Shown: positions 5,548-30,883 of the stretch, piece after piece | How the letters are laid out: each line of letters begins with the position of its first letter | How positions within the stretch are numbered: the first letter of the stretch is position 1 | Assembly: GCA_946965045.2 (NCBI GenBank) | Contig: OX337241.1 | Location: 1,178,001-1,242,000 of the forward strand | Source of the DNA: Epithemia pelagica | Lineage: Eukaryota > Protista > Bacillariophyta | Length of the DNA: 64,000 bases | Direction: 5' to 3' | Made by a program: the position numbers and the translations under genes | The notes under the pieces: generated by a model | What the model was told of the DNA's origin: nothing | Databases searched by the model: none | What the model saw: only the letters and a program-made list of their open reading frames with translations

Positions 5548-5595
5548 GCGTCTAAGGAGGTTTTTTGAAGATAAGTGACTGGAATTCCACCAACA

Positions 5596-5776
5596 GGCGC
5601 GTGACACACGCCCAATAGGCGCGTGCAGCACCCCCAGAACACGGATCACGCGCATTTGGCGCGTACGAAGCGCGTGGCGCTCCAGATTGCGCGTGAATGC
5701 GCGTGAAACGTGTAGACAACGCGTGAAACGTGTTGACACCCGCGTGAACATGTTTATTGTATGTGGAAACGCGTGC
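5596..5776. repeat. Subterminal cluster of CGCGTG motifs
   Basis: About 8 CGCGTG copies plus one CACGCG within 180 bp of the left TIR. One further GCGCGTG lies about 10 bp inside the right TIR. Confidence 0.7.
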
Positions 5777-6077
5777 ACAGAGCCTAACCTTTGCCTAGAT
5801 ACCTAACTACTAGCTACACATATAACACCTAGTATTCCAGTCGCACGTAAACTCCAAAAGCGACCCACAAATTTCTCCTCCACCACCAAATCACGTCACA
5901 GTGACATACGAAGAACAATGGACACAAAATCACAGAAGAACGCTGAAAATTAGATTTTCCTCACACAACAACCACACAAAAGATATACTCTCCCACTTTT
6001 GTGATCACTTTTTGACGATAGTGTCATAGAGTGCCTCATCCAACTCACACCAACCCCCAACGCCCCAAAAAACACAC

Positions 6078-6141
6078 AGCAGCAGCAACAACAACAACAA
6101 CAACAACACAACAGCAACAACAACAACAACAGCTACAACAA
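6078..6141. repeat. (CAG/CAA)n microsatellite
   Basis: Direct reading: cagcagcagcaacaacaacaac... Confidence 0.9.
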
Positions 6142-6192
6142 ACAGGCGAACACAAAGAGAATCATTTCCTTTTTCAAATTGGAAAGGTGCTA

Positions 6193-6925
6193 GGTAAGCC
6201 AAGTCGACAAGACAACAGTGAGAGTTCGTTTTGTCGTTTTCCTATATGCCCACTAATCATTTTCTTCTGTTTCCATGAAAACCCAACCATGTGATCGCTG
6301 TTTGGCAACTATTTCTTCCCTCCTATCATCCCACAAGACAATTTTCAACGCTTTGAACGACTGGATGGTGGTTCTGTTTGAAAAAGGGCGAAGACACCAA
6401 GTTGGTGCACCCATTTCATTCTCCCATCAATTTCCATCGACCAAAACTGGTTGGATTGCTGGATTGCCGCTGCTTCTTCCCTCCTATTATCCCAGAAGAC
6501 CATTTTCAACGATCTGAACGGTCGGATTGGTGAGGATTCTATTGAACAAAGGGCAAAAAGGTAAGCCAAGTCGACAAGACAACAGTGAGAGTTCGTTTTG
6601 TCGTTTTCCTACATGCCCACTAATCATTTTCTTCTGTTTCCATGAAAACCCAACCATGTGATCGCTGTTTGGCAACTATTTCTTCCCTCCTATCATCCCA
6701 CAAGACAATTTTCAACGCTTTGAACGACTGGATTGGTGGTTCTGTTTGAAAAAGGGCAAAGACACCAAGTTGGTGCACCCATTTCATTCTCCCATCAATT
6801 CCATCGACCAAAACTGGTTGGATTGCTGGATTGCCGCTGCTTCTTCCCTCCTATTATCCCAGAAGACCATTTTCAACGATCTGAACGGTCGGATTGGTGA
6901 GGATTCTATTGAACAAAGGGCAAAA
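6193..6925. repeat. Tandem duplication of about 367-368 bp (2 copies), containing a diverged 105-bp monomer
   Basis: ggtaagccaagtcgacaagacaacagtgagag occurs at 6193 and 6560, and gacaccaagttggtgcaccc at 6393 and 6761. Confidence 0.9.
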
Positions 6926-8342
6926 GACACCAAGTTGGTGCACCCTCTTCCTTTACCCCTCCATCTCCATCGACCAAGACCCTGTTGGATTGCTGTGTTG
7001 CTACCCCTTCTCAATTGGAACAAGGGCCGAGACACCAAGTTGGTGCACCCATTTCCTTCACCCCTCCATTTCCATCGATTAAAACCCTGTTGGATTGCTG
7101 TGTTGCTACTCCTTCTCGATTGGAACAAGGGCCGAGACACCAAGTTGGTGCACCCATTTCCTTCACCCCTCCATTTCCATCAACCAAGACCCTGTTGGAT
7201 TGCTGTGTTGCTACTCATTCCCGATTGGAACAAGGGCTGAGACACCAAGTTGGTGCACCCTCTTCCTTCACCCCTCCATCTCCATCGACCAAGACCCTGT
7301 TGGATTGCTGTGTTGCTACTCCTTCCCGATTGGAACAAGGGCTGAGACACCAAGTTGGTGCACCCATTTCCTTCACCCCTCCATTTCCATCGACCAAGAC
7401 CCCGTTGGATTGCTGTGTTGCTACTCCTTCTTGATTGGAACAAGGGCTGAGACACCAAGTTGGTGCACACATTTCCTTCACCCCTCCATTTCCATCGACC
7501 AAGACCCCGTTGGATTGCTGTGTTGCTACTCCTTCTTGATTGGAACAAGGGCTGAGACACCAAGTTGGTGCACACATTTCCTTCACCCCTCCATTTCCAT
7601 CGACCAAGACCCCGTTGGATTGCTGTGTTGCTACTCCTTCCCGATTGGAACAAGGGCTGAGACACCAAGTTGGTGCACCCATTTCCTTCACCCCTCCATC
7701 TCCATCGACCAAGACCGTGTTGGATTGCCGTGTTGCTACTCCTTCCCGATTGGAACAAGGGCCGAGACACCAAGTTGGTGCACCCATTTCCTTCACCCCT
7801 CCATCTCCATCGACCTTGACCCTGTTGGATTGCTGTGTTGCTACTCCTTCCTGATTGGAATAAGGGCCGAGACACCAAGTTGGTGCACCCATTTCCTTCA
7901 CCCCTCCATCTCCATCGACCTTGACCCTGTTGGATTGCTGTGTTGCCACTCCTTCTCGATTGGAACAAGGATCAAGACACCAAGTTGGTGCACCCAATTT
8001 TCACTCCTCCATCACCATCGACCAAGACCTTGTTGGATTGCTGTGTTGCTACTCCTTCCCTATTGGAACAAGGGCCGAGACACCAAGTTGGTGCACCCCT
8101 CTCCATCCCTCCTTCATCTACATCGACCAAGAAGACCCCATTGGATTGCTATATCTTGATTGGTGGTTCTGTTGAAGGGCCGAGACACCAAGTTGTTGCG
8201 CCCCCATACTTCTATCTTCTATCTCTATCGACCAAGACCCTATTGGATTGTTGTATTTGCTACTGATTCTTGACTGGAAGGACCGAGACATCAAGTTGGT
8301 ACACCCATATCCCTCACTCCTCCATCCCTATCGACCAAGACC
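6926..8342. repeat. Tandem array, 105-bp unit, about 13.5 copies
   Basis: gacaccaagttggtgcac recurs at 6926, 7031, 7136, 7241 and onward at 105-bp spacing. The last copies are degenerate. Confidence 0.95.
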
Positions 8343-8460
8343 CTCCAGGGTTTCCATCACGCAAGCTTGAGAAACGGTAGTATCAAGTTGCATCGGAACC
8401 CTGCATCGAAAGAAAATTTCTCCTCGTTTCTTCCCCAAGCTGATTGAATCGCACGTTAAT

Positions 8461-11400
8461 ATGGCTGATTCGGTAGAAGATTCCGATCGATATTTCCCAG
8501 ACTTGATATGTTATGAATATACAATCGAGTGGTATCGTTCTGTTTATTCCAACACTGATAATTGGACAGATTTCTCCACTACATATGGAGGTGAAACCAT
8601 ATTCGTATCCCTCTTGCGCTGTGGATCAAGTATTTTCAGTGATATCGCCTCGCATGCTGCTGTTTGTTTCCCGAAGATACTGAGACTTGTAGAGACGATC
8701 GAAGAACAACAAGAGGGAAACAAGAGTGACGGAGCTGGTAGTTTTATTTCACCAGGAATCGACCTATTCGAACAAACTCTATATGGAGACGCACTTCGTC
8801 TGTGGGACAAGGAATTCCCGTCAACGACAAGATCAAAGTCGAGCGCAAGCTTTACTCGATCCCTCAAGGTGTTTCTTGGAGCTCATCCTATGCTCGCTGA
8901 TATTGTCCTCAACTCGTATTCGATGGAGAGACGGCTTAATGTCGTGGCTGCAAAAATATTGGACTACATGACGTCTGATAGATCGAAGTTTCGGAAAGAC
9001 AGAACAATAGCAGTCCGAGAAATGGTTTGGAGCGTTCAACATATGGCAGCTGTCTATCGGGTATTGGAATCTGACTCCTATGAAATGGAAGGAGTCGATG
9101 TTGAAAAAGCATTAGCCCTTACACTTCCTGATTGCTGGTTTCGTCCTTATTTTGACATACCAAGAGCTGCTAAGTATCCCGCGAACGACTATTCCAATTT
9201 GGCGGTTCTAATTTCATATTACCAGACGATGGAACGGGAATACGCTACAAAGACGAAGGAGTATCAGAAGGGGCGACATGAACAACGATCTCAAGACAGG
9301 AAACGCCGTAAACGAGCGTCAGACAGTAGATGTGATGGTGCAACAAGTTCTACCATTTTCACTGTTTCAAATAACGAGAGCAAATCACCATCTCAGTCTC
9401 TGTCGGCGACTGAGGAGGATCGGAGTTCCATTTTTGATACTCTTGCATTGAAAAAGAAACCACAAAAAGGAAAACAAGCGACGACAAAAAAAACTTCCTC
9501 TCAATCAAAGGTGGGTCTGTTGGAAAGTAAATCACATGTTGACCACGGTAGCGACAAACCTAAAGGAATACCAAAGAAACCACCTCCTCTCAAGAATAAA
9601 CCTGGTCCATCAGACGACCTTGCATCTTTCACTAACGACCGTTTGATTCATATGGCTAACTGGTCCCTCAAACAGTCGATGTCAGCGATCAATGAAGCTT
9701 GGGATCTCTGTAAAGAAAGTGCCGTTCGACGTAAGGGAAGCATCCATGAAGTTGTTTTGCGATTTGTCTTTACCTGTGCTTGCTGTAACAACAAGAATGG
9801 TTCTCTACAACATGACAATGGGAAAATGGACGTCCTTTTTGTCCCACATCGCCAGTACAGACGAAACCTTTTGCTACGGACGAATACTCAAGAGACGACT
9901 GAGTTTAAGGGGATCCCTCCCCTCATATTCAGGTCGATGCTTGTGCTGGTGGTTCATAAATGGCACAACAAGTCCGTTTGCTTTGAGCAAATTGACGAAG
10001 ATAGTCTGAGAATGGACACAACGACTGCAATGGATTTGAGTTCGTCATCTTCCGATACTACATTGGTCGTCGTCACTACCAAGTATGAAGCTTTTGATCC
10101 CGTCTTAATCCTCTTACAAGCACATCAAAGAGAAGTGTTGATATTTGATCCATTATCGACAAGGGATATTCGCTCGTGGAGGCCTACAGTGATTCGATGT
10201 CTACGGAAACTAAGGCTATTGGACGACGAAAAGAAAATCCAATCATTCTTGAGCGTTGATATAAAGGAAGAGCTCGTTGGATGTGACTGGAGATTCATTT
10301 ATAAGAAGTATCCGAATCCGGTGGCACCAAGTGCGTGTACGCTTCCCCAAGTATCAATCATATGTGTGATCGACGAGATCCTGTCAAAGGCGTCCCCTAA
10401 TATGTCCTGTGATCAGATGATGGGGAAATGGGCTCAAGAATTGCCATCGTGTAGGCGAGAATGTCACAAGGCCTGCAATCATATCGTGAGTACGGCTATC
10501 AATAAAGCGAAACGTGATTCGACTCTGCGTGTATGTTTCAAGGACGTTAATGACGATACACGTCCAAGGATCAAACGCAGTCGCCGGTTTATAATGGAAG
10601 GGAAAGATCGAGGGGAGGTAATGGAAGATATGCTGGATTCCGACGATGAACGATTCGAGGACATTAAAGTGATACAAGAGATTACAGAAGCGGACAAGGC
10701 GCTCGAACGACTTCACGAAGATCGGCGATTTTTGGATCTGGTACGAACATTGAACGATGAAGATCAGAAAGAGGCACTCTGTTCCACTTGTGGGACTTCA
10801 TTGCTTAAAAAGGATCTGGATAGAAGTCAGACCTTTTCTATCGTGAGTTGGACAAGGCAAGAAACCTCCAACTGTCCTCATTATCATTGTCCAACATGTA
10901 CTTTCATCCGGAATTCGGTGAAGAATCGATTTTGTTCCATATGCGGTCATATGCATGCTGAGCTAATACGACACGATCTACATGAGACAGAATTAATCGC
11001 GAAGAAAGACAAGACAATCGTCCTAGATGAATATGATGAAGACTCCGAACAATATTGTGCCATATGCCATGGACAGCGTCCTAACGACTGTCGGATCGAG
11101 AGATGCGGGCACAAGTTTTGTCGGGTGTGTCTTGGTCAAGTCCTTACCACCGAAAAACAAGTTCCTATGGGGAAACAGAAATCGACACCTCCTGAAATGA
11201 ACGAGAGTTGCCCTTTGTGCAACGGAGATATTGCTTCAATTACGTACACCAATGTACATGATGGTTCAGTTGAAGAAGTTGGCGTGTCAAAAGAGGAACA
11301 TCGTGGTCTCTACAGACCGGTCCCTGTATTTCCAGAGACAGCATGGGGTCGTGTACCGTTGGAAACTCTCCGTTTCATGAGTAAAAAACAGCAAAAGGAG

Positions 11401-11472
11401 AAGAATAGGAGAGACCAAACTGCATCTTCTACTGTCACGATCAGTAACACAGAAGCGAAAAGGCAAGTCTGA
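8461..11472 (+). CDS. Large cargo protein with two C3HC4 RING-like fingers; probably exon 1 (8461-11462) of a RING-TET/JBP fusion
   Basis: 1003-aa ORF with CSTC...CPHYHCPTC...CSIC and CAIC...CGHKFCRVC...CPLC, and basic NLS-like patches. Confidence 0.75.
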   Translation: MADSVEDSDRYFPDLICYEYTIEWYRSVYSNTDNWTDFSTTYGGETIFVSLLRCGSSIFSDIASHAAVCFPKILRLVETIEEQQEGNKSDGAGSFISPGIDLFEQTLYGDALRLWDKEFPSTTRSKSSASFTRSLKVFLGAHPMLADIVLNSYSMERRLNVVAAKILDYMTSDRSKFRKDRTIAVREMVWSVQHMAAVYRVLESDSYEMEGVDVEKALALTLPDCWFRPYFDIPRAAKYPANDYSNLAVLISYYQTMEREYATKTKEYQKGRHEQRSQDRKRRKRASDSRCDGATSSTIFTVSNNESKSPSQSLSATEEDRSSIFDTLALKKKPQKGKQATTKKTSSQSKVGLLESKSHVDHGSDKPKGIPKKPPPLKNKPGPSDDLASFTNDRLIHMANWSLKQSMSAINEAWDLCKESAVRRKGSIHEVVLRFVFTCACCNNKNGSLQHDNGKMDVLFVPHRQYRRNLLLRTNTQETTEFKGIPPLIFRSMLVLVVHKWHNKSVCFEQIDEDSLRMDTTTAMDLSSSSSDTTLVVVTTKYEAFDPVLILLQAHQREVLIFDPLSTRDIRSWRPTVIRCLRKLRLLDDEKKIQSFLSVDIKEELVGCDWRFIYKKYPNPVAPSACTLPQVSIICVIDEILSKASPNMSCDQMMGKWAQELPSCRRECHKACNHIVSTAINKAKRDSTLRVCFKDVNDDTRPRIKRSRRFIMEGKDRGEVMEDMLDSDDERFEDIKVIQEITEADKALERLHEDRRFLDLVRTLNDEDQKEALCSTCGTSLLKKDLDRSQTFSIVSWTRQETSNCPHYHCPTCTFIRNSVKNRFCSICGHMHAELIRHDLHETELIAKKDKTIVLDEYDEDSEQYCAICHGQRPNDCRIERCGHKFCRVCLGQVLTTEKQVPMGKQKSTPPEMNESCPLCNGDIASITYTNVHDGSVEEVGVSKEEHRGLYRPVPVFPETAWGRVPLETLRFMSKKQQKEKNRRDQTASSTVTISNTEAKRQV

Positions 11473-11569
11473 TCTATATTATTAGTACTCTCGATCAAAA
11501 GAAGAGACATTCTAGTTTCAGGTATTTGGCATTTCTATCCGCGTACTAACTATGTCTTTGTACTACAAG

Positions 11570-13595
11570 AAGTTCGGAAACGACAAGCACACATCCTAGA
11601 GCGGAGGTGACATCCATAAAGAAGAAACATATTCGTCCCACTTTCGAAGATATGGCATCGGATCAGACGATTTCGAGACTCACATGTACACAGGAGACAT
11701 ATGCCAAGTACGAAAAGAAGAAAACGCAACGTATAAGTGAAACAGTGGTCACCATGTCGCATCGGAACGAAAGTGCACACGAAAGAATGTGCTACTTTGT
11801 CTTGGACAAGGACATCGATCGAATAAGGATGCTATCGCATCTACTGCAGCGTTGCTTTGGAAGTTACGACGATCAAGATTGTTTTGGTTTGTCGTTCGAA
11901 AAAGAGATGATACAACGGAAGGTCGATATGAAAGATATCCCGAGTGTCTTTGCACGTATCCCAGAAATATACAACAAGGCTATGGATGATGTTGTGGAGA
12001 CAAGAGATGACGTTGTCAGTCATTCGAACATTATACCAGAATGTTGTCCTATGATTGTAACTCAAATCCCGGTGGGTCTTGTAACAAAAACGATCCACAA
12101 TGCATTCATATTGGAATGTACCTTGTCGAGGACAAGATATAGAGAAATCAGGAAAAAGACAACACATGTGTCGTCCTCTATATTCGAAGATCCTGTCATG
12201 ATGATTCGGACTAACAAAAATTTATGTCTTGACGAAAATGATCACCTCTTCAGAGATATCATTATCCTCTTCCCTTTGGCTGGGGTTTTTTATACATGTG
12301 TGCGTCAATTTCAAGAACTATCAAGGTCGTCCAACATCACATCGTCATCAGTCCCACTACCGTTGTCTTGGTTACGTCTGCGACACAAAGATGGCCAACC
12401 TGCAAGTAATGCATTCTTGAAAAAAATTCATCGTTGTTGGAGTCTAGATTGGGGTGAACATCTTACTAATAATGACAAAACTGTGAAGGAATGTTACCAA
12501 TGGTCCGATGTGGAGGATGGGAGCCCACTTTTACCTCCTGACGTGTACCTCGATGACAAGGGAAAGATCGAAAAGCCAGGGAATAAACAGTCGATGACAC
12601 ATCACATGTCACGGGAACAATATCGAACAAGGCTGATTATAAACAGGAATGACTCAGATAAGAAAGGGAGTCGGAGATATGTTAGTGGTGCTTTGCATCG
12701 AAACCTATGGTTGCAAATGTCGTCCGGTACACACCCAAGGCCACTGGTATACGACCATCGTATTCGGGGAAACATTACTTTCATTGTTCGGACACGCCGA
12801 AATGATGGGAGACCAGAGTCACTTAGTTACATTCGAGTGACATCCCTGTTACGGAAAGACCAGACGTTGTTGGACCTATTACACAACAGAGCAAGGGAAT
12901 TTACACGTACTGGGTCTCTGAGAAAGGCGGCCAATGCCAGATGTAATAAGGGAGACTTAGGATCTATGACTACTGTTGGTAATACTGCGGCAAGAGGAAA
13001 CGGTTCTACTTTCGTTTCCGAGAAATTATTTACAAAGGACAAGACATTATCGATGATACTGCCGAAAATAAGTACAGCGGCAAAAAGGTTTTGTGAACGC
13101 GAATATCCTGGGGTGATTCCAACATTCCGGTATCTAGAAGATTCAGCTGGCGAAGAAATGCCTAGTGAATTCGGAGGAAGAGTCGGAGGTATGACCTCAG
13201 CCATTACCCTGAGTTTGAACCTCATGAACACGACACACTATGATGTTCACGATGGTTCTGTTTCATTCGCAATCTGGACAGAGACAATCCCAGGTGACTC
13301 TCAAAATTGGTTCTTTGTTTTGCCGAATATTCTTGTGGAGTATGATGGTACTACATACCATGGTCTTTGTATACAACTATTTCATGGGGTTTCGGTTCTA
13401 TGGGATGGACGTGTGATCCGGCATGGAACGTCAATACACACACAAAGACAACATACAGATGGGAACATGAAGAACGACACTATTAGTTGGTTTTGGGCAG
13501 TAAGTTCCAGGTCTATGAATGCAACTGTCAACGAAACAAGAGAGGACCATGGTATAACCAAAACGGTTCAAGGCATTCGTAGCGGAACATTATAA
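11570..13595 (+). CDS. TET/JBP-like Fe(II)-dependent dioxygenase domain protein (ORF 11607-13595; predicted exon 2 starts at 11570)
   Basis: NLMNTTHYDVHD gives an HxD motif (His codon at 13236). It is followed by WFFVLPN, GVSVLWDGRVIRHGTS (distal His codon at 13422) and a final strand TISWFW. The spacing fits the double-stranded beta-helix of TET/JBP enzymes. Confidence 0.65.
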
Positions 13596-13634
13596 ATTCT
13601 TTCTGGATGCATTCATCACCAAGGAAAAACAAAT

Positions 13635-14510: not shown

Positions 14511-14699
14511 CTTTTATACGATATCGAACGGTCTTCTTGAAGAGTAATGGTACGAGGATTTCTGTTTGCGGTTGGAAGAAAATGTACTTCAGAGAAAACA
14601 ACTGATCCTGACTATCTCTCAATTCTTATCGTTTTTATGGGGAAAAATTCAAATAACGCTAAGAATTTCTGAGTCTTGTTTGCTTTGTCATACGAATCA

Positions 14700-17600
14700 A
14701 TGGAGGATGAAATGAGCGTACGAAATTTTTGGACGATGTCAAGGCCAACGCTATATCGGTATGGTCTATTGCAAGCCTTTCTCGTATCTGATCACGAGAT
14801 CAGATCCTATGGTATCCATAAAAATGAGACACTATGGGTCTCTTCCAAAATCTGGACCGATTCCATGAAGAGAAGGATCTCTTTGCTCCATGTCCATACA
14901 ATTTTGGCACGACGACAACGCCAAACCGATCTAATCTATTGCAAGCCTTTGTCTTGACGGCACATGAGATCAGAGCCTATGGTACACATGGCTATGATGT
15001 CCCGAGGATATGTACCAAGACCTGGGTCGATTAGATGAAAAGAAAAATGTCTTTGTTCCAAAAAGTCTATGGAAGATTGGGACGACGACATCACCGCACC
15101 GGTGTGGTCTACAACAATAATTTACGTCAATGATAGACGAGTTCAGCGCCTATGACGTCCGTGCCTATGATACCGCAAGTGTCTGTACCGATTTTTGGAG
15201 CGCTTCAAGTCATAGAAGGGTGTTGTTGCTCCATACCCCTCATGGAAGGTTGAGACAACGAAAACGCGATACTGGTATGGCCTACAACGAGACTTTTGGT
15301 CCGCGATAGACGAGATCAAAGACTATGACATCCATTCCTATGATACCCCAAGTGTCTCTATTGAAATTTGGAGCGATTCAAGTTATAGAAGGGTGACTTT
15401 GCTCCATGTCCATGGAAGTTTGGTACAACGGCAACACCACACCAGTATGGTCTACTACAAGACTTTTGGTCCATGGTACACGCGTTCAGAGCCTATGACA
15501 TCCATTCCTATAATACCCCAAGTGTCTCTACCGAAATTTGGAGGGATTCAAGTTATAGAAGGGTGTCTTTGCTCCATGTCCATGGAAGTTTGGGACATTG
15601 ACAACACTACATTGGTATGGTCTACAACGAGACTTTTGGTCTGCGATACACGAGTTCAGAGTCTATGACGTCCATGCCTATGATACCCAAAGTGTCTCTA
15701 CCGAAATTTGGAGCGATTCAAGTTATAGAAGGGTGTCTTTGCTCCATGTCCATGGAAGTTTGGGACATCGACAACACGTCACCGGTATGGTCTACAACAA
15801 GACTGTTGGTCTGCGATAGACGAGTTCAGAGCCTATGATATCCATGCCTGTGATACCCCAAGTGTCTCTAGCGAAATTTGGAGCGATTCAAGTTATAGAA
15901 GGGTGTCTTTGCTCCATGTCCATGGAAGTTTGGAACTTCGACAACACGACACTGGTATGGTCTACAACAAGACTTTTGGTCCGCGATAGACGAGTTCAGA
16001 GCCTATGACGTCCATGCCTATGATACCCCAAGTGTCTCTACCAATATTTGGAGCGATTCAAGTTATAGAAGGGTGTCTTTGCTCCATGTCCATGGAAGTT
16101 TGGGACATCGTCAACGCGACAGTGTTATGGTCTACAACAAGACTTTTGGTCCGCGATACACGAGTTCAGAGCCATTGACGTCCATACCTATGATACCCCA
16201 AGTGTCTTTACCAATATTTGGAGCGCTTCGAGTTATAGAAGGGTGTCTTTGCTCCATGTCCACAGAAGTTTGGGACATCGACAACGCGACACTGGTATGG
16301 TCTACAACAAGACTTTTGGTCTGCGATACACGAGTTCAGAGCCTATGACATACATGCCTATGATACCCCAAGTGTCTCTACCAATATTTGGAGCGCTTCG
16401 AGTTATAGAAGGGTGTCTTTGCTCCATGTCCATGGTAATTTGGGACATCGAAAACGCGACACTGGTATGGTTTACAACAAGACTTTTGGTCCGCGATAGA
16501 CGAGTTCAGAGCCTATGACATTCATTCCTATGATATCCTAAGTGTCTCTACCAATATTTGGAGCGATTCAAGTTATAGAAGGGTGTCTTTGCTCCATGTC
16601 CATGGAAGTTCGGTACATCTACAACGCAACACTGGTATGGTCTACAACAAGACTTTCGGTCTGCGATACACAAGTAACGAGTCTATGACGTCCATTCCTA
16701 CGATACCCCAAGTGTCTCTACCAATATTTGGAGCGCTTCGAGTTATAGAAGGGTGTCTTTGCTCCATGTCCATAGTAATTTGGGACATCGAAAACGCGAC
16801 ACTGGTATGGTCTACAACAAGACTTTTGGTCCGCGATAGACGAATTCAGAGCCTATGACATTCATGCCTATGATATCCTAAGTGTCTCTACCAATATTTG
16901 GAGCGATTCAAGTTATAGAAGGGTGTCTTTGCTCCATGTCCATGGAAGTTCGGTACATCCACAGCGCGACACTGGTATGGTCTACAACAAGACTTTTGGT
17001 CCGCGATAGACGAGTTCAGAGCCTATGACATCCATGCCTATGATACCCCAAGTGTCTCTACCAAAATTTGGATCGATTCAAGTTATAGAAGGGTGTCTTT
17101 GCTCCATGTCCATGGTAATTTGGTACAACGACAACGCGACACTGGTATTGTCTACAACAAGACTTTTGGTCCGCGATAGACGAGTTCAGAGCCTATGACG
17201 TCCATGCCTATGATACCCCAAGTGTCTCTACCAATATTTGGAGCGATTCAAGTTATAGAAGGGTGTCTTTGCTCCATGTCCATGGAAGTTTGGGACATCG
17301 TCAACGCGACAGTGGTATGGTCTACAACAAGACTTTTGGTCCGCGATACACGAGTTCAGAGCCATTGACGTCCATACCTATGATACCCCAAGTGTCTCTA
17401 CCATTATTTTGAGGGATTCAAGTTATAGAAGGGTGTCTTTGCTCCATGTCCACAGAAGTTTGGGACATCGACAACGCGACACTGGTATGGTCTACAACAA
17501 GACTTTTGGTCTGCGATACACGAGTTCAGAGCCTATGACATCCATGCCTATGATACCCCAAGTGTCTTTACCAATATTTGGAGCGCTTCGAGTTATAGAA

Positions 17601-20600
17601 GGGTGTCTTTGCTCCATGTCCATGGTAATTTGGGTCATCGACAACGCGACACTGGTTTGGTCTACAACAAGACTTTTGGTCTGCGATACACGAGTTCAGA
17701 GCCTATGACATCCATGCCTATGATACCCCAAGTGTCTCTACCAATATTTGGAGCGCTTCGAGTTATAGAAGGGTGTCTTTGCTCTATGTCCATGGTAATT
17801 TGGGACATCGAAAACGCGACACTGGTATGGTCTACAACAAGACTTTTGGTCAGCGATAGACGAGTTCAGAGCCTATGACGTCCATGCCTATGATACCCCA
17901 AGTGTCTCTACCAATATTTGGAGCGATTCAAGTTATAGAAGGGTGTCTTTGCTCCATGTCCATGGAAGTTTGGGACATCGTCAACGCGACAGTGGTATGG
18001 TCTACAACAATACTTTTGTTCCACGATACACGAGTTCAGAGCTATTGACGTCCATACCTATGATACCCCAAGTGTCTCTACCATTATTTCGAAGGATTCA
18101 AGTTATAGAAGGGTGTCTTTGCTCCATGTCCACAGAAGTTTGGGACATCGACAACGCGACACTGGTATGGTCTACAACAAGATTTTTGGTCTGCGATACA
18201 CGAGTTCAGAGCCTATGACATCCATGCCTATGATACCCCAAGTGTCTTTACCAATATTTGGAGCGCTTCGAGTTATAGAAGGGTGTCTTTGCTCCATGTC
18301 CATGGTAATTTGGGACATCGACAACGCGACACTGGTTTGGTCTACAACAAGACTTTTGGTCTGCGATACACGAGTTCAGAGCCTATGACATCCATGCCTA
18401 TGATACCCCAAGTGTCTCTACCAATATTTGGAGCGCTTCGAGTTATAGAAGGGTGTCTTTGCTCCATGTCCATGGTAATTTGGGACATCGAAAACGCGAC
18501 ACTGGTATGGTCTACAACAAGACTTTTGGTCCGCGATAGACGAGTTCAGAGCCTATGACATTCATGCCTATGATATCCCAAGTGTCTCTACCGAAATTTG
18601 GAGCGATTCAAGTTATAGAAGGGTGTCTTTGCTCCATGTCCATGGAAGTTTGGGACATCGAAAACGCGACACTGGTATGGTCTACAACAAGACTTTTGGT
18701 CAGCGATAGACGAGTTCAGAGCCTATGACATCCATGCCTATGATATCCCAAGTGTCTCTACCATTATTTGGAGCGATTCAAGTTATAGAAGGGTGTCTTT
18801 GCTCCATGTCCATGGTAATTTGGTACAACGACAACGCGACACTGGTATGGTCTACAACAAGACTTTTGGTCCGCGATAGACGAGTTCAGAGCCTATGACA
18901 TTCATGCCTATGATATCCCAAGTGTCTCTACCGAAATTTGGAGTGATTCAAGTTATAGAAGGGTGTCTTTGCTCCATGTCCATGGAAGTTCGGTACATCG
19001 AAAACGCGACACTGGTATGGTCTACCACAAGACTTTTGGTCCGCGATAGACGAGTTCAGAGCCTATGACATCCATGCCTATGATACCCCAAATGTCTCTA
19101 CCGAAATTTGGAGCGATTCAAGTTATAGAAGGGTGTCTTTGCTCCATGTCCATGGTAATTTGGTACAACAACAACGCGACACTGGTATGGTCTACAACAA
19201 GACTTTTGGTCCGCGATAGACGAGTTCAGAGCCTATTACGTCCATGCCTATGATACCCCAAGTGTCTCTACCAATATTTGGAGCGCTTCGAGTTATAGAA
19301 GGGTGTCTCTGCTCCATGTCCATGGTAATTTGGGACATCGAAAACGTGACACTGGTATGGTCTACAACAAGACTTTTGGTCCGCGATAGACGAGTTCAGA
19401 GCCTATGACATTCATGCCTATGATATCCCAAGTGTCTCTACCGAAATTTGGAGCGATTCAAGTTATAGAAGGGTGTCTTTGCTCCATGTCCATGGAAGTT
19501 CGGTACATCTACAACGCGACACTGGTGTGGTCTACAACAAGACTTTTGGTCCGCGATAGACGAGTTCAGAGCCTATGACATCCATGCCTATGATACCCCA
19601 AGTGTCTCTACCGAAATTTGGAGCGATTCAAGTTATAGAAGGGTGTCTTTGCTCCATGTCCATGGTAATTTGGTACAACGACAACGCAAGACCGGTATGG
19701 TCTACAACAAGACTTTTGGTCCGCGATAGACGAGTGCAGAGCCTATGACATTCATGCCTATGATATCCCAAGTGTCTCTAGCGAAATTTGGAGCGATTCA
19801 AGTTATAGAAGGGTGTCTTTGCTCCATGTCCATGGAAGTTCGGTACATCTACAACGCGACACTGGTATGGTCTACAACAAGACTTTTGGTCCGCGATAGA
19901 CGAGTTCAGAGCCTATGACATCCATGCCTATGATATCCCAAGTGTCTCTACCATTATTTGGAGCGATTCAAGTTATAGAAGGGTGTCTTTGCTCCATGTC
20001 CATGGTAATTTGGTACAACGACAACGCGACACTGGTATGGTCTACAACAAGACTTTTGGTCCGCGATAGACGAGTTCAGAGCCTATGACATTCATGCCTA
20101 TGATATCCCAAGTGTCTCTACCGAAATTTGGAGTGATTCAAGTTATAGAAGGGTGTCTTTGCTCCATGTCCATGGAAGTTCGGTACATCTACAACGCGAC
20201 ACTGGTATGGTCTACCACAAGACTTTTGGTCCGCGATAGACGAGTTCAGAGCCTATGACATCCATGCCTATGATACCCCAAATGTCTCTACCGAAATTTG
20301 GAGCGATTCAAGTTATAGAAGGGTGTCTTTGCTCCATGTCCATGGTAATTTGGTACAACAACAACGCGACACTGGTATGGTCTACAACAAGACTTTTGGT
20401 CCGCGATAGACGAGTTCAGAGCCTATTACGTCCATGCCTATGATACCCCAAGTGTCTCTACCAATATTTGGAGCGCTTCGAGTTATAGAAGGGTGTCTCT
20501 GCTCCATGTCCATGGTAATTTGGGACATCGAAAACGTGACACTGGTATGGTCTACAACAAGACTTTTGGTCCGCGATAGACGAGTTCAGAGCCTATGACA

Positions 20601-21722
20601 TTCATGCCTATGATATCCCAAGTGTCTCTACCGAAATTTGGAGTGATTCAAGTTATAGAAGGGTGTCTTTGCTCCATGTCCATGGAAGTTCGGTACATCT
20701 ACAACGCGACACTGGTATGGTCTACCACAAGACTTTTGGTCCGCGATAGACGAGTTCAGAGCCTATGACATCCATGCCTATGATACCCCAAATGTCTCTA
20801 CCGAAATTTGGAGCGATTCAAGTTATAGAAGGGTGTCTTTGCTCCATGTCCATGGTAATTTGGTACAACAACAACGCGACACTGGTATGGTCTACAACAA
20901 GACTTTTGGTCCGCGATAGACGAGTTCAGAGCCTATTACGTCCATGCCTATGATACCCCAAGTGTCTCTACCAATATTTGGAGCGCTTCGAGTTATAGAA
21001 GGGTGTCTCTGCTCCATGTCCATGGTAATTTGGGACATCGAAAACGTGACACTGGTATGGTCTACAACAAGACTTTTGGTCCGCGATAGACGAGTTCAGA
21101 GCCTATTACGTCCATGCCTATGATACCCCAAGTGTCTCTACCAATATTTGGAGCGCTTCGAGTTATAGAAGGGTGTCTCTGCTCCATGTCCATGGTAATT
21201 TGGGACATCGAAAACGTGACACTGGTATGGTCTACAACAAGACTTTTGGTCCGCGATAGACGAGTTCAGAGCCTATGACATTCATGCCTATGATATCCCA
21301 AGTGTCGCTACCAATATTTGGAGCGATTTAAGTGATAGAAGGTGTCTTTGCTCCATGTCCATGGAAGTTCGGTACATCTACAACGCGACACTGGTATGGT
21401 CTACAACAAGACTTTTGGTCTGCGATACACGAGTTCAGAGCCTATGACATCCATGTCTATGATACCCCAAGTGTCTCTACCAAAATTTGGAGTGATTCAA
21501 GTTATAGAAGGGTGTCTTTGCTCCATGTCCATGGAAGTTTGGGACATCGACAACACGACACCGGTATGGTCTACAACAAGACTTTTGGTCTGCGATACAC
21601 AAGTAACGAGTCTATGACGTCCATTCCCACGATACCCCAAGTGACTCTACCGAAATTTAGAGCGATTCAAGTTATAGAAGGGTGTCTTTGCTCCATGTCC
21701 ATGGAAGTTTGGGTCATCGACG
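14700..21722. repeat. Satellite array, 170-bp unit, about 40 copies, with higher-order structure
   Basis: The monomer gagcctatgacatccatgcc...gcgatagacgagttca repeats at 170-bp spacing from about 15090 to 21722, with degenerate copies from about 14700 to 15090. Confidence 0.97.
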
Positions 21723-23379: not shown

Positions 23380-26300
23380 TCATGATCCAGCAGTGTTACG
23401 ATCTTTTGTTGTTGTTTGTGAAGGATCTGATGATGATGTATATCTTGCTCTCAACGAATCACTTGCTGAGTCATTGAACTCATTGGCCCATTTACTGGCA
23501 GGAAGTACCTCCCATACAATATCGGAATAGTTCCTGTGATTCCGAGTATATTCAAGCAATATTTCTCTTTCCGCATCAGAATGCAGGTATTCCGGTACCT
23601 TATCTCGGTGTTGGATCATTTCCGGGTTTTCATCGATCACTCCTACCAATTCAACTATATTGGTGATAGGAACCAATACAAGATCGGGAACACGGGAATT
23701 CCGGGTAAAGGCCTTGCTCCATCGAATGAAAAGGACGGAGGACTTCTCTTTATCCTTGTCACTACGACGATAAGTGGTTCGTAGTAAAGCATGTGTGACA
23801 TCTCTCGGTTTTTCTTGGTGGATTCTTGATGTACGAGCATCATTTCCCTGTTCTTGCATGTGACCAGCACTTTCCCGTTGTTCCCATGGTCTGCGTATGA
23901 AGCATAAAACCTGACAGAGTACCAAGATATTGTCTGTTCCCTGATTACCTGTTGCAGTGTCAGTGAATGGTGTTCGCTGGTGTCGTGGGATCCATGCTTT
24001 CACCCAGTCTCTCCAAGGACCCTCACTTTGGTAATTAGGATGACATCGGATACCACCTATGTTTTCGTCCCTGAATTTGACCTCTGTACACCCATGGATC
24101 ATGATGTAATCACTTGTGTCATTCTGTTGTATAATATTCATTTGTGTGAAGAGTGCACTTGCATGTTTCACCAGGAAGTCAAGGATTACTTTTGGGAGGA
24201 TCATACCGGTATTTGTTTTCGAAATATACTTGTAAGTACACTTGACCACGGGGCTCTCTGTCCGTCCAAATCTGACCAATTGGATTTGTATTGTTGTCCC
24301 TCGCCCCTTGAATTTACATCTATCTTCTTCACCGTCCTCGTCATTTTCCTTGCCACAATGGTTGGAGATTGACCATTTTTTAGTAGCTCCACGTCATCTT
24401 GTTTGATCCCTGATGCTTTACAGAGCAGATCCCATGCCTGCATCTGCCATATGTTATCACCAAGTTGACTGTCGAAGACACCCTTACCCCGCTTTTGTAC
24501 TGTTTTGGCATTCAGTTTGACAATTTCTTTGTGGTTACTCTCCTCTGATTCAGTGTCGGATATTTTAACTGGGCCGAAATTGGACACCTGTCGAACTATA
24601 TGTACCAAGTTGTGGTATTTTGGGATCATCCAACCATTGCACATCAGTTTCCCTTTTTTATCCAATCGTGGTGCATACCGCCGTATACCATCCATCATTA
24701 TCTTGACAGATTCAACTGATCGTCGCGCTGTTTCCTTCGCGGCAGGAGAACGTGGGTCGCTATCCCAAAATCTATCCATCCTTGTCCAGCTGTTGAAACA
24801 GAGTATTGTCTCAAACAGGAAGAGGAAATCGAGATATGGTTCCCGTTCACCTTCATCCCAGATCGATGCATATGCCACAGGGTCATCGTCGAATACTGTT
24901 TCGCTCGTAACCTGTACCTCAATGTCAGGTTCACAATATTGGTAATCTTCATTTTCCTGTACATGAACGGGCAGATTGTCGTTGATATTTGTGGTTATTT
25001 CTTCGTTACTATCATCCACAGGTGAGTCATTCTCATCCGAATCGGATGAAGCATCAGCGATACTGTGGTGTACAACCGGGTTTTTTTTCGATTGTCGTTG
25101 ACGTTTATTGTTGGTAGTGGATACGTTGTTTTGTCCAGCGCCCATTCGTTGTCGTTTTTTCTTTTTTTTTTCTAATTCATTTTTCTTTCTCTTCCGTTCT
25201 TTCTCTTCTTCCTTTTTCTTTCGTCTCTCTTCTTCTTCTTTGCACCATTGTTTCCACTCTGCAACTACTTTTTTCCATTTCTCCGCCATAGTCGAAGCGA
25301 AAATAAGATGACCACGAACAGAAACACACAAAGCGGCTGAGACAAACATAATACCAACCCATTCATTGGCTGTTACCTTTGTAACATTACTGATACCTGC
25401 AGAGAAGGATGTTCTGGGGTACCCCCAACTAGAAGAATAAGAGAATATCGACTGCCGGTTGGCTCGGAAGAAAGAGCTGTACAAGAAATCAAACATGGCT
25501 TTTTCTCTCATTGTCATCAGAGCAAAGAAATCAGTCATGATATATTTCATGATCCCCGATTTCAAAGTATGTAATACATCACAACATGCCGCGGTAAAAA
25601 TCCCATGTGTTTTATTAACACCCTCACCCAAATACAAATGGTTGTAGATGTTGTTCACTGGGTATTGTCCAATCTGATGTAAAATTTTCTTGGAATTGTT
25701 CACAGGTTCTCTCCAAGGATCCTCTCTCGGATCATCTATGCCGGGTTGTCCAGAATCGATAACTATTGGGTTTCCTGATGGTTTATCTAAACCAAGCACA
25801 CGGAGGCTTCTGAAATGGATAGGGTTTTTGAAGAGGTAGTTGCATGTGGACCATGGGTATCTAGACTCCCGAGGTGTGCAATCACACTGCCAAACAAGCC
25901 GGCCAACACTTTGATGATGAGATGCATATCTTCCTGCGATGTTATCTTGTGACTTCGCATCTCCCTTTATCATGATCACGGGTAATACTAATCTCACCAC
26001 CTTCTCGATCCCATGGATCCGTAATCGCATCCACAATCCACCTCGATTCTGTATCTTCAAAAGAGCTTGGTGTATTCGCGAGAGCTGTGCATGATAATTC
26101 CGACAGGGGGACCCCCTATCCAAGATGTATTTGGCCGCAGATGACTTCCGTTCCATATCTGTGATCAACCCTAAGATGATTTGTCTATTCGGTTTTCGCA
26201 TTTCAGACATCGTCAAAAATGAAGGTACCATAACAACTGGTTCCGCATTAAAGCGACCATCCCCTGTCGCGTGTGTCTTATCCATATAAGACAATAAACC

Positions 26301-27476
26301 AACAACGAAAGTATCGTTGTCATGTCTGTATTTCCGTACGGTACGTTGGAAAACATGGCCATCTTGTATGTTTTCGAGACATTTATTCGGTGTATAAGGG
26401 CGATACGGGTCGTCATCACATAATATTGTTTTATCCTTGGAAGTGGCTTCAGGATCTTGCAAGACACGTCGAAGTTGATGCACAAAATCAAATATAACGG
26501 TATCAACGGACTTCTCACTGTCTGGAACGATTATATCCTTTTTGGTTGTAACTTCCATTGGGACGGTGACAATCTTTGGTTTGGGGAAATCGAAACCTCT
26601 TTTTTCGAATTTCGCCATGAATCCCTTTCGCCGTGGATGTTTTTTATTGAAAAAACGTGAGCCACAACACTCGTTAGTATAATCAATCCATGCCAAAATG
26701 GCATCGAACATGAACTTCGGACACCCAGCATTCCGGAGGAGTATGGCCAACCTCAATAAAGCCTTGTCATCTTCGGAAAATTGGAGACCATTTTGTTCAA
26801 GATACACTGGAAATTCCAAAGGATTGTCTTTTGAGTTTTCATCGATAACATGGTCATCACTGGATGAACCTTTGCCTTGGACATCCTCATTGTCATCGAC
26901 AGTTTGTTGGAGCCCATCATCATGATCTGCTGATGGTCCCTCTTCTTGGTCCTCATCTGATTCTTCCTCATTCTCAGATGACAGCAAGGAATGAGCAATA
27001 TTTGTACTATTCCGACATGGCTGTCTCACGATGGGTTGTTTTTGTGTAGTGGGTTGCAGATCCTCTCTTTCCTCATCTTCTCGATCGTCCGCCCAGGGTA
27101 TCCCTACAGCACCATTGTCGGTTACTCCATTTTCTGAAATGCCTACAGCACTATCATCGGTTCCTCCATTTTCTAAATGATTTCCCTGATCTTTATCATG
27201 AGAGGTATTGTTCTCGACACCAGCAGTTTCGTGGCATATCATGGACGATTCGTGCTCCAATGCATGTGAGACCAAAGTGCCGTTTTCTCTTTTGGTGCTA
27301 CAAACCCTTTCATGTTGGAAGATCCCGGAGACGTGGAATAATACATGACAATTTCTACATTTACGACATGGAAGAATGGAACCACCTGTACTCGCATTTG
27401 GATCTTCGCCTACCCATTGATCTTTGATGACGGAAGGTTTATTTCTTAAATACCTTGGTTTACAAGGACGGCCCAT
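23380..27476 (-). CDS. Plavaka/CMC-family transposase, split by a -1 frameshift near 24375 (ORFs 24201-27476 and 23380-24279)
   Basis: N-terminal CxxC...H zinc-finger-like motif, YMDKT, KGDAKSQD, CDVLHTLKSG, PKYHNLVH, FGP and TESEESNHKEIVK. The second ORF supplies the C-terminal CHPNY..GPWRDW motif. Confidence 0.8.
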
Positions 27477-27910
27477 GGTATTGGTTTTGTGGTCCTTAGT
27501 CTTTGTGGAATGAGAATCATTGCTAATGTGACGACTGACACGAATGGTTTCGATTTTATGGTCGCCCGGCTCGCTTTTTCATTGGTTGTGGATGGATATG
27601 GTTTACCCCCACCCCCCCGCCCATCCACCCATACTATTCTACATAAACTATGAGTCTATCGGTACATGGGATCGGAACGAACACAAATGCCCATGTGGCA
27701 TTGGTCGTTTGAATGTATAATTGTCGCCTGTCGATTTGGTTCAATTCAAAAAAAACCGGGTGTACTCGGAACAAACGGCTCGACTTTTGAAAGTTGATAG
27801 TCGAAAGGTAAGACCTCAATGAAAACGGATTGGCATAACATTCTCCTCTTGTTGCACCCAAAACTCATTGCATTGTCAACACTTCTTATATCAGGTATAC
27901 TCTTCTTGTC

Positions 27911-30238
27911 ATGTCGCCCCCTTCTGAAATAAACCAGGGGACCAAGAATAGAAAACAAGGAAGCCAACGCTGTGGTGATCCAAAGCAAGATAAAAAGGAC
28001 AACCAAAACAGTAAGAATTCAGCGTTCCATGGTTTATCTGGTGGCAAAGATGTTGGAGAAAGCAGTACCGATGATGAAACAGACGACGAAGAAATAACGA
28101 TCAGAGATGTCAACAAGAAGAATAGCAATGATGACCGTAACCAAGAGGATTCAGGATCCGTATCTGAAAAGAGTCAGGTAATATATCAGGAAAGAGGAGG
28201 ACGGGGAGCTTCATCCAACGAATCCCAGGACCAAGGTAGTACCATGAGCTGTACAGGAACCCGTGGTGTTACTAATACAGGAGCACCTATGGAATCCGAA
28301 CACAATACTGCTGTTATGAATGGAGTCGACCATGGTCAGCGAGTTCCTTATAATGCGAATGGAGTTGCTCCATATCCGAATCATACCCATCCTTATCCTC
28401 ACCAGCAACCAAATCCATCGGTGTTGTCATTTCTTCCTCAAGGGCAACAACAACATCAGGTCCATACACAGTTCAATTATTCCCAAGCTCCTCTTGGGGG
28501 GCAACAACATCATCATTTCCCGGCGGCGTCATCATCTACGATTTATCCACAACAAGGAACTGGTATTATGGTGCATCAAGGATACCCACAACAGCAGATG
28601 ATGTCTGTCCCATACCCACCCAATGGGGGCGTTCTGATGCAAGGAGGCGCTGGTGTTCACCAACCACAGCAAACACATCACCATATGGATACAAATAATA
28701 TTGAGTGCGCAGCTAATGACAATGGTGGTGTGACTGTAATGTCGCACCAAGATGTTGAAAATATTATGGAAGAGGTTATGGGTGGTGGTGGTGGTGGTGG
28801 CGGAGGAGTCAGTCGCGTTTGTAAGTAAGGTGTACTTCCTTTGTTTTGTTTGTGCCCTATCGGTATTGACTGGTTAGAGTGGAACTCTAATCTGGGTTGA
28901 TGTGGGTTTGGAAATGTACAATCGAAAAAGATGTGGACTTCTGGATGGATGATGTTTCCTCACTTTCTGATCTCTCTTGGTCGTCATCATCTCTTGTAGC
29001 CATGGAAGTCGGAGGCGATAGCTCAATGGTTGCATCATCTATCTATGGTACTAGTGATGGTCAGAGTTCTGGGGCTAATGCAACGTCTGGTGAGAGGGAA
29101 AGAAGGAGAGAATACAAGAGGGAAAGAAAGAGAGAACAGCAAAGAAAGAGCAGGAGCAAATACAAGGATCTACCCTTAGCTTGTCGTACGGATGAGTTCC
29201 AGACTTTTGTGCCTGATGTTGCTTGGAGGTACGTGAAGTATTTCTCACTTGCCGATGATTGTGATGCAGATGATAATGGATTATGGCATTTGGGGAAGGA
29301 TCACTTCAAGGCGTATTTCGAACGAGAAAAGATTATTGGTGATGTGGCTAAGGCAAAGTGGTGGGAAAGGTATTCCCCCCATTTGAGGAAAGAATTCAGA
29401 CGCAAGAGATCAAATGTTCTACAATCGCTAAGGTTCAGGTTCATGAGTAAGTTGGTACTGTCTTGGTGCTATCTTGTTCTCATTCTTGTGGAAAGTTTTG
29501 TTCTAACATGAGCCTTCCTGCCTGGCAGAACATTTCTCGTTAAATCTATGGAGAACACATGGTGGTGGAATTGTTCCGCGACAATTCCCTAAGTTATTGG
29601 TTGACGATGAAAATCTAGGTCCTATGCCAAGTCTTGAAGAGATGATGCAAATGAGAGGAGTGAATGGAGACAATGATGCTTATGTTTTCATGTTTGAAGT
29701 ATTTGGGGGGTCGGTTTATGGAGATGGAATGGTGAGAGATATCATTAATCAAGATATTACAGCTAATACACCAGAAGCACAAAAGCAAGCAATATGGAAG
29801 GAAGCGATGAGTAAGTTTACTACGAGTGATGAAGCTTTCATTCTCTTGGCTCTTGAAGATTCATGGGATGCATGGGCTCTGAGGAGCAGACAAGAGTTCA
29901 AACAAAAGTTGTACAAAGAAGACCCTGCTTGGTGTCAAGCGCACCAAATTAATGAGGACATTGATACAGATGGAGTAGAACAATACAAGTATTCAGGTTG
30001 TGCAAACAAAAAGGGACGTGGTATGAGTGATATTGGCCTTGATCGTCTTGATGAATTGCAGCAGAAGGTGAGGGATGATCGAGAATATGTATCAGTTGAT
30101 GGACTGTTTCAGAGACAAAATGTGTTCATGGAGAATCTTCTTAAGAAACATCGGGAGAGGATGGGATATGTGGACAGTGCTGATCAAGATCAACCGCAGC
30201 AGAAAAAGCGGAGGAAGCACGGACTCTGGTTTTTTTAA
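27911..30238 (+). CDS. Spliced transposon accessory protein; predicted exons 27911-28820, 28931-29446, 29529-30238
   Basis: GTAAGT donors at 28821 and 29447 and AG acceptors ending at 28930 and 29528 join three ORFs in frame. Q/P/H-rich N-terminus and C-terminal TSDEAFILLALED..W and KY..G...G..R motifs. Divergent from the transposase. Confidence 0.6.
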
Positions 30239-30327
30239 ATAGTATCTCTTCATTAGCTTCTGTGCATGTTTTCACATTCTTCTGTGGATGGTATCGATTG
30301 TGTTGTGAAATGAGTTACCATAAGTGT

Positions 30328-30540
30328 GTGGCTTCTGCTGGTGCTTTTGGAGTCTGAGATGCAAAAGGTGGGTGGCTTCTGCCGGTGCTTTCGGTGCCTG
30401 AGATGCAAAAGGTGGGTGGCTTCTGCCAGTGCTTTCGGAGCATGGGATGCTAATGGTGTGTGGCTTCCGCTGGTGCTTTCGGAGCATGGGATGCAAAAAG
30501 GTGAGTGGCTTCCGCTGGTGTCATTGGAGAATGGGATAGG
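30328..30540. repeat. Tandem repeat, 44-bp unit, about 5 copies
   Basis: gtggcttc(t/c)gc.ggtgctttcgg.gc.tg.gatgc.aaaggtg recurs. Confidence 0.85.
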
Positions 30541-30883
30541 AGAGATTGGGGGTTTGCCCTTGTGTTATTGCACCTGTGGAGAGGGTGTATAGATGCCTTG
30601 TTCCGATGAGGTTGGTACTTTGTGTTCAGAGTGTTTTGGACGTGGAGGGCAAGGTCAGTGTGCTTAGAAGGTAAGTTCTCTGTGCGTGGAAGATGGGAGT
30701 GTGCGTGCGTGGAAGATAGGGTCGCCGTGAATGTGTATGATGTTGTATGTGCGTGATGGTGGGGGGGGATTAGTCAAAATGGTGTAAATCCGTATAAAAA
30801 AACCGGGTACGAAAAATGGCGCATGCCGACGGCGCGTATGGGGTGTGCGTTTTGGGGGCGCGTGACGCTGCCCTTAGACGCAT

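Follow-up and report, generated by a model that had tools for sequence, protein, structure and literature searches.

The window analysed here, a stretch of 64,000 nucleotides from Epithemia pelagica (assembly GCA_946965045.2, contig OX337241.1, positions 1,178,001 to 1,242,000 of the forward strand), contains a DNA transposon of 25.3 kb (window positions 5549-30880) that carries, among several other genes, a dioxygenase with a TET/JBP-like fold. The element is a single copy of a multi-copy family. Taking the evidence together, we consider it probable that this is a recently amplified transposon of the Plavaka branch, in which the TET/JBP-type enzyme is selected cargo that may act against silencing. 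The coordinates of its features are collected in Table 1.

That the element is a cut-and-paste transposon with the boundaries given is the firmest part of this reading, and we hold it with high confidence. Three other copies (B, C and D) break homology with the window at the same two bases. The terminal inverted repeat (TIR) is the nonamer CGTCTAAGG, which occurs twice in the window, both times at an end of the element, against 0.26 occurrences expected by chance. In copy B, TA stands directly before CGTCTAAGG on the left and directly after CCTTAGACG on the right; the junctions are TG/CGTC and GACG/TG in copy C, and CA/CGTC and GACG/CA in copy D. The family rule is a 9-bp TIR directly abutted by a 2-bp target site duplication (TSD): TA in copy B, TG in C and CA in D. 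Perfect 2-bp matches in three of the four copies would arise by chance with a probability of about 0.001. The window copy reads TG/CGTC on the left and GACG/CA-TG on the right, with two additional bases on the right. This extra-CA parse is formally equal to placing G...C in the TIR with AT as the duplication (AT is found on both flanks, at 5546-47 and 30882-83), or to a 3-bp ATG with one extra C. A 3-bp duplication (ATG) was rejected for the family, as it misfits copies B, C and D; it is still possible for the window copy alone.

The empty site, GGCGATGGATTG, is identical under all parses, and each of them restores an open reading frame (ORF) of the host. Removal of the element joins 2281..5547 to the sequence from 30884 in one frame (..LFIVGD/GLSLDRIFQF..): the ORF 2281..5568 completes a codon at 5547, and a codon of the downstream ORF begins at 30884. 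The joined product of about 1,800 residues has a low-complexity N-terminus and a highly acidic C-terminus, and the insertion lies within its ..FIVGDGLS.. motif. It has no Pfam match, and an exact look-up of the product found no identical record. The interrupted gene is possibly itself a transposon gene, in which case the element would be nested in another mobile gene. Just inside the ends, the motif GCGCGTG is concentrated: six of its eight occurrences in the window are in the left 300 bp of the element and one more is in the right 300 bp. Subterminal repeats of this kind occur in CACTA-type elements.

An earlier note, made from the letters of the window alone, had described TIRs, a 2-bp duplication and a host ORF restored by removal of the element, and all of these are borne out, the last by the single frame across the junction. 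Its own parse, AT with a TIR of GCGTCTAAGG, suits the window copy just as well, but in the family the TIR is the 9-bp sequence given above. The cargo it listed (a RING protein, Cys-rich paralogues and satellites) is all present in the sequence, and its placement of a dioxygenase inside the same boundaries finds support: all four copies, and also a related but diverged family (L010), carry the dioxygenase at the same place.

The other copies come from ENA assembly ERZ21939226, whose tie to the window's assembly we infer from the 98-99% identity of the copies. Clustered at 90%, that assembly holds 17 variants of the RING ORF and 26 of the transposase, on different contigs. Both ends were fetched for three copies: B on ctg1362l (L005 and L001/L004), C on ctg1299l (L006 and L007) and D on ctg1293l (L003 and L008). 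Outside the satellites, the three are about 98-99% identical to the window copy. Copy size ranges from 22 to 25 kb, mainly from length variation of the 170-bp satellite, and the position of the dioxygenase is the same in 4/4 copies. The accessory set that the copies have in common consists of the RING protein, the dioxygenase, the two Cys-rich paralogues, the small ORFs and the internal satellites. In L010, the proteins are overall 26-47% identical to those of the window element (47% for the TET protein). Its gene order is nevertheless the RING-ORF domains, the RING, the TET domain and then the Cys-rich genes on the opposite strand, despite the insertion of a Copia element. The latter, at L010:13703-20016, is a Copia-type retroelement (RVT_2) within what is a decayed related RING-TET element. 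We considered whether the window element could be a composite of separate insertions, and rejected this: the four copies share the inner order and the ends, and L010 keeps the order from RING to TET to Cys-rich genes at 26-47% identity. Copies without the dioxygenase, which would have marked it as an independent insertion, were not found among the four.

The dioxygenase belongs to a large family. An exhaustive phmmer search found 614 relatives, among them "hypothetical proteins" of the diatom Fragilaria crotonensis. Conservation was judged from an alignment of 30 relatives over the last 262 residues of the enzyme. The HxD...H signature that the earlier note had seen is conserved in these 30, with H544, D546 and H593 each at least 90% conserved. 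Two arginines, 9 and 12 residues past H593, are present in 28/30 (R602) and 25/30 (R605) of the relatives, and the N-terminal R445 is also conserved. AlkB, TET2 and JBP1 place the 2-oxoglutarate-binding Arg at what we take to be the corresponding spacing after the distal His. The conserved motifs among the 30 are NAR, NxSHYDxxD (which contains the HxD), NWYFVLPN and LxHG...WDGRxIRHxTS. The first ATG of the ORF is at 11655, where the ENA gene calls start (647 residues).

The identity of the fold comes from structure. The AlphaFold 2 model of the dioxygenase has a pLDDT (predicted local distance difference test score) of 90.3, and Foldseek places TET2 at the top of the PDB with E 5e-9. When the Foldseek matches were re-aligned with VIA-align, ranks 1-16 were all TET-family structures (NgTET1 15.2, TET2 14.7, CcTet 13.9, CMD1 13.7), with FTO and prolyl hydroxylases next at about 12. 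A VIA-align search of 48,161 representative chains, independent of Foldseek, returned the same four proteins as ranks 1-4 (NgTET1 15.1, TET2 14.5, CcTet 13.2, CMD1 12.9), and the first non-TET matches in it were prolyl hydroxylases at 11.9. Among AlphaFold DB clusters, "Tet-like 2OG-Fe(II) oxygenase domain-containing protein" ranked first. In the Atlas, 72/100 of the matches by features were Tet_JBP. The Atlas matches by shape were led by two unnamed eukaryotic clusters, one of them mostly Bacillariophyta, followed by Tet_JBP (TM 0.66) and PF20515 (0.68); other 2-oxoglutarate (2OG) families were at about 0.5. The TET/JBP-like identity proposed earlier is thus supported by structure, the four solved TET-family types being the closest PDB neighbours. 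The TET-like domain is preceded by an N-terminal part of about 400 residues, of unassigned fold. Some distant relatives (P0104, P0126 and others) are 1,600-1,750 residues long, and two of them have DEAD/Helicase_C domains, which suggests other domain partnerships for the family.

In the mechanism that we propose, the dioxygenase would oxidise a modified base, most likely 5-methylcytosine (5mC). Its target would be the DNA of the element itself, to which the element's repeats perhaps direct it, and the oxidation would remove or mask host silencing methylation. We offer anti-silencing by 5mC oxidation tentatively, as a possibility that falls somewhat short of being probable. A TET/JBP fold could instead be used without 5mC demethylation: for thymine hydroxylation as by JBP (base-J-like), for a vitamin C adduct as by CMD1, or on an RNA substrate, and the outcome on the element's DNA would be a new mark instead of the erasure of one. 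CMD1 is indeed in the top four structural matches (Z 12.9-13.7), and identity to every characterised enzyme is only 9-17%. NgTET1, the top match, acts on thymine as well, and 5-hydroxymethylcytosine is undetected in Naegleria (PMC12344493). The conserved arginines 9 and 12 residues past the distal His, together with the N-terminal Arg, fit ordinary 2-oxoglutarate use, and in silico nothing discriminates among the 5mC, thymine, vitamin C-adduct and RNA options. We regard a departure from 5mC of this kind as rather unlikely.

It is also conceivable that the substrate of the dioxygenase is a protein and not a DNA base: the enzyme would hydroxylate a chromatin or silencing factor of the host, which a RING E3 ligase would then ubiquitinate. 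Prolyl hydroxylases do come close behind in the structural ranking (Z 11.5-11.9), and the ORF immediately upstream, on the same strand, encodes a RING finger that may be fused to the enzyme. However, no protein hydroxylase ranks as high as any of the four TET-family representatives, either among the re-aligned Foldseek matches or in the search made independently of Foldseek, and Tet-like or Tet_JBP families supply the best AlphaFold DB and Atlas neighbours, so that we judge protein hydroxylation to be improbable.

The pattern of differences among the copies speaks to whether the cargo matters to the element. By Nei-Gojobori counts in three pairwise comparisons (the window against copies B, C and D), pN/pS, the ratio of non-synonymous to synonymous differences per site, is 0.13-0.16 for the TET gene (e.g., 15.5 synonymous vs. 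8.5 non-synonymous changes), 0.23-0.36 for the RING ORF and 0.25-0.47 for the transposase. By these counts, most of the differences accumulated while purifying selection acted on active lineages. Since the copies differ mainly at synonymous sites, the TET and RING ORFs appear to be selected cargo that the element lineage needs. We find it very likely that a TET/JBP-type enzyme is selected cargo of this element.

Individual copies have nevertheless been damaged. The transposase is frameshifted in the window and has its own 19-bp deletion in copy B. Copy C has a stop in the TET gene and an insertion of about 420 bp (L006 ~13190-13610, equivalent to window ~11596), which falls between a predicted splice acceptor and the ATG of the dioxygenase; the junction of this insertion recurs as a loose end at 11596 in one DNA run. 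In copy D, 340 bp are inserted between the RING and TET genes, after the RING stop (L003:13021-13360, equivalent to window ~11479) and inside a putative RING-TET intron. This insertion has inverted ends, AAGACTGATTCCAT...ATGGAACCAGTCTT, with an apparent short AT-rich duplication, and looks like a miniature inverted-repeat transposable element. Such damage, and the fact that the sequence runs examined were DNA-like assemblies that gave no expression data, would suit the view that the window copy is a dead relic, its cargo inert baggage and its dioxygenase without a role, but the low pN/pS of the dioxygenase and RING ORFs, the gene order kept in L010 at 26-47% identity and the intact transposases in at least three copies make this view improbable.

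The transposase of the window copy lacks 34 bp near 24345 relative to copy B, and the reading frame is consequently shifted; the ORF 23380-24279(-) that follows in a separate frame is 44% identical to the end of P0001. Intact transposases are 1376 residues long and occur in at least three copies (e.g., P0172 in copy C). Because the deletion breaks the frame, the window copy is by its sequence not autonomous, and would depend for any movement on transposase supplied by intact copies. P0181, a member of the transposase cluster (2696 residues, on a 772-kb contig), is about twice the normal length and may be a read-through or a fusion gene call.

The link of this transposase to Plavaka is transitive, through a single bridging protein, P0155. 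A word-indexed search with the 1091-residue ORF found only a handful of relatives. A profile from four relatives (A3) retrieves P0155 with E 1.8e-56, and in BLASTP the window transposase matches P0155 with E 2e-32 over 567 residues, with a second segment that spans the conserved glutamates. P0155 itself scores 38.9 bits on the Pfam Plavaka model PF18759, for which the cut-off is 26.3. By protein-language features, Plavaka clusters are nearest (50/100 matches, score 0.95), followed by Transposase_21 and RAG1. The candidate catalytic residues are D399 (26280-26282), D506 (25959-25961) and E979 (24540-24542); these three columns do not vary within the transposase family or in P0155, and would belong to an RNase H-like fold; the model of the core has a pLDDT of 38.5, too low to judge this. 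PDB sequence searches, with a profile and with the single sequence, gave no match for the transposase or for the dioxygenase. The 2-bp TSD (TA, TG and CA, and in the window TG with two extra bases, or AT) agrees with the Plavaka rule, given as 2 bp or 2-3 bp (Kojima, 2025; PMC12730594). We think it quite likely that the element belongs with the Plavaka branch of the CACTA/EnSpm (CMC) superfamily, with a DDE-type transposase. We call it Plavaka-like, a relative by lineage and not a member by Pfam model or termini.

In the RING ORF, a conserved domain at the N-terminus is accompanied by a zinc-finger region and, at residues 866-925, a C3HC4 RING. The RING has weak matches only, to Pfam and to E3-ligase RINGs of the PDB, and Pfam scans of all ORFs of the element returned nothing beyond these weak RING matches. 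Homologues of the RING ORF were sought and turned up within its own family only. A predicted GC-AG intron of 107 nucleotides, with a candidate branch site TACTAAC at 11545-11551, would join the RING and dioxygenase ORFs in frame into a protein of 1675 residues without a stop. The enzyme may therefore, if the intron is used, be made as a single RING-TET protein; it could also be a separate dioxygenase starting at the ATG at 11655. P0009, a protein with an N-terminal extension, has no similarity to the RING ORF and so lends no comparative support to the fusion. More speculatively, the 1675-residue protein might combine an E3 ligase with a DNA-base dioxygenase and be recruited to the element's repeats, there erasing or rewriting cytosine methylation and ubiquitinating a host silencing or chromatin factor, a twofold anti-silencing effector captured in the diatom lineage independently of fungi. 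We consider this fuller scheme doubtful.

It should be noted that several results weigh against the view of the element as a Plavaka-branch transposon with a selected, TET-type cargo. The dioxygenase has no match to Tet_JBP (PF12851), PF20515 or any other 2OG-FeII family of Pfam, even at E 10. One of 36 relatives touches PF20515 (E 2.6e-4), and a profile of the dioxygenase searched against PDB sequences finds no TET chain. The margin of TET structures above generic prolyl hydroxylases is just 1-3 Z units. The window transposase, and with it P0001, P0003 and P0004, has no match to PF18759, even at E 10. The AlphaFold model of the transposase core, made with five sequences, was discarded for its low pLDDT. 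The termini, CGTCTAAGG..CCTTAGACG, differ from those of fungal Plavaka, which are TGT..ACA in PlavakaA and CATCA..TGATG in PlavakaB (PMC12730594). As for the fusion, three runs that hold 8400-14300 are DNA-like assemblies (contigs up to 509 kb) without a joint at 11463/11569. Finally, in a sister family (L002, on ctg1263l of ERZ21939226), RING fingers and dioxygenase are absent over 10 kb upstream and 7.5 kb downstream on the contig, and the RING/TET cargo is therefore not universal.

These results set the limits of what we claim. It is because the Pfam model and the termini fail, while the homology through P0155 and the TSD agree, that we call the element Plavaka-like only. The profile searches that the earlier note had proposed, PF18759 for 24201-27476 and Tet_JBP or 2OG-FeII for the dioxygenase, are both negative for the window proteins themselves. 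Its Plavaka-type transposase survives as a relationship through P0155, without the direct match and with the frame broken in this copy. On the side of the enzyme, the best structural matches are TET-family proteins and not 2OG oxygenases that act on other than nucleic acids, by a modest margin. The sister family is informative about the history of the cargo. Its transposase is 54% identical to that of the window family, and it has homologues of both Cys-rich genes and of two of the small ORFs; with the RING ORF it shares the N-terminal domain. Because these accessory genes are shared and the RING and TET modules are not, the comparison suggests that the latter were added later, onto an older accessory gene set. 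Also in L002, a protein of 1264 residues is encoded upstream, with a weak match to DEAD helicases.

Table 1. Features of the element and of its insertion site (window coordinates)
Feature	Position	Strand	Remarks
Interrupted host ORF, 5' part	2281..5547	+	
Left TSD	5547-5548		TG by the family rule; alternative parse of the earlier note, AT at 5546-5547
Left TIR, CGTCTAAGG	5549-5557	+	homology to copies C and D begins at base 5549
Left subterminal repeats	5590..5780		with GCGCGTG motif
Tandem repeats, 367 bp x2 and 105 bp x13.6	6192..8344		found in copy D too
RING accessory ORF, 1003 residues	8461..11472	+	intact; N-terminal and middle parts common to L002 and L010
Predicted GC-AG intron, 107 nucleotides	11463..11569	+	GC donor 11463, AG acceptor 11568-69
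Dioxygenase ORF, 662 residues from GTG	11607..13595	+	intact
TET/JBP-like double-stranded beta-helix domain	12807..13592	+	
Conserved Arg R445	12939-12941		
Iron ligands H544-x-D546	13236-13244		
Iron ligand H593	13383-13385		
Conserved Arg R602	13410-13412		
Conserved Arg R605	13419-13421		
Cys-rich accessory ORF, 291 residues	13635..14510	-	homologues in L002 and L010
170-bp satellite, 39 copies	15065..21721		length differs among copies
Cys-rich accessory ORF, 423 residues	21733..23004	-	41% identical homologue in L002; paralogue of the 291-residue ORF (E 2e-12)
Transposase, C-terminal domain	23380..24279	-	separate frame after deletion
Transposase, N-terminal 1091 residues	24201..27476	-	frameshifted
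Three small ORFs (305, 204 and 213 residues)	27911..30238	+	last two conserved in L002
44-bp tandem repeat x4.5	30324..30520		right subterminal region
Right TIR, CCTTAGACG on + strand	30872-30880	-	homology to copies B, C and D ends at 30880
Right junction	30881-30884		extra CA 30881-30882, then TG duplication 30883-30884
Interrupted host ORF, 3' part	30884..33022	+	

Outside the element, long ORFs free of introns code for a myosin, two ferroportins and a DUF1995 protein, and because of this gene content we read the window as part of a protist nuclear genome. The myosin lies close to haptophyte, diatom and animal clusters alike. Leads towards a diatom are the Fragilaria crotonensis relatives of the dioxygenase and the nearby Atlas clusters, most of them of Bacillariophyta, so that from the sequence "diatom-like" is a reasonable label. 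The two ferroportin (FPN1) genes adjoin and are convergent, at 35735-37762 (+) and 38728-40467 (-). Further on, the region 51233-57752 (-) has two long overlapping ORFs of 1338 and 877 residues, one with a reverse-transcriptase domain. Its GC skew is +0.24 to +0.33 and its AT skew -0.24 to -0.43, and it is probably a retroelement.

Elements comparable in part to this one have been described. Two of their features, a TET gene carried by a transposon and a giant Plavaka with a 2OG oxygenase, are already known; what is new is the diatom-like host and the RING, Cys-rich and satellite partners. Full-text literature searches found no paper linking Plavaka to a diatom or stramenopile host. The existence in one genome of both intact and broken dioxygenase copies provides a natural test of whether methylation is lowered in cis or in trans. 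Since current Pfam models do not detect this family of 614 relatives, much TET-like activity of marine algae may be going unnoticed.

The nearest structures are those of NgTET1, human TET2, Coprinopsis CcTet and Chlamydomonas CMD1, with which the window enzyme has in common the HxD...H ligands; conserved Arg residues are present as well. In contrast to TET1-3, it has no Cys-rich or CXXC domain. The Arabidopsis VANDAL21 transposons encode VANC, which lowers methylation of their own copies. The likeness here is that of a DNA transposon with an accessory protein acting on its own silencing, which for the window element is proposed. VANC, however, is a sequence-specific DNA-binding protein and not an oxygenase, and VANDAL21 belongs to the Mutator superfamily. 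The VANDAL anti-silencing accessory protein is also mentioned in a study of the red alga Bostrychia moritziana, which describes Plavaka elements of 17-19 kb with accessory genes PAG1-3 (10.1101/2025.02.11.637652). PAG3, a putative 2OG-dependent oxygenase, adjoins tandem repeats there, and its proposed role is to modify the sequence of the element that carries it (10.1101/2025.02.11.637652). The red-algal and window elements are alike in having several accessory genes, among which is a putative 2OG oxygenase near tandem repeats. PAG3 has a weak match to a generic 2OG oxygenase and a ParB-like DNA-binding domain, and is likened to our enzyme by description only; PAG2, with a DNA methylase and a SET domain, has no counterpart in the window element.

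The closest parallel in strategy is found in fungi, in which DNA transposons carrying TET genes, including Plavaka, have been described (PMC12730594; Iyer et al., 2014, cited therein). The TET-carrying Plavaka of fungi (PlavakaB) and the window element are alike in being cut-and-paste and CACTA/EnSpm-related, with a 2-bp duplication and a TET/JBP-fold cargo inside the terminal repeats, and the role proposed for the fungal TET-carrying transposons is likewise escape from methylation-based silencing. The window element differs in its algal host, in its termini (CGTCTAAGG) and in proteins that fail Pfam models built on fungal proteins. It is also much larger (22-25 kb), and adds a RING protein, Cys-rich paralogues and kilobase-scale satellites. 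A selected TET-fold gene in a Plavaka-like element of an alga would mean that the same strategy is in use outside fungi, with new partners.

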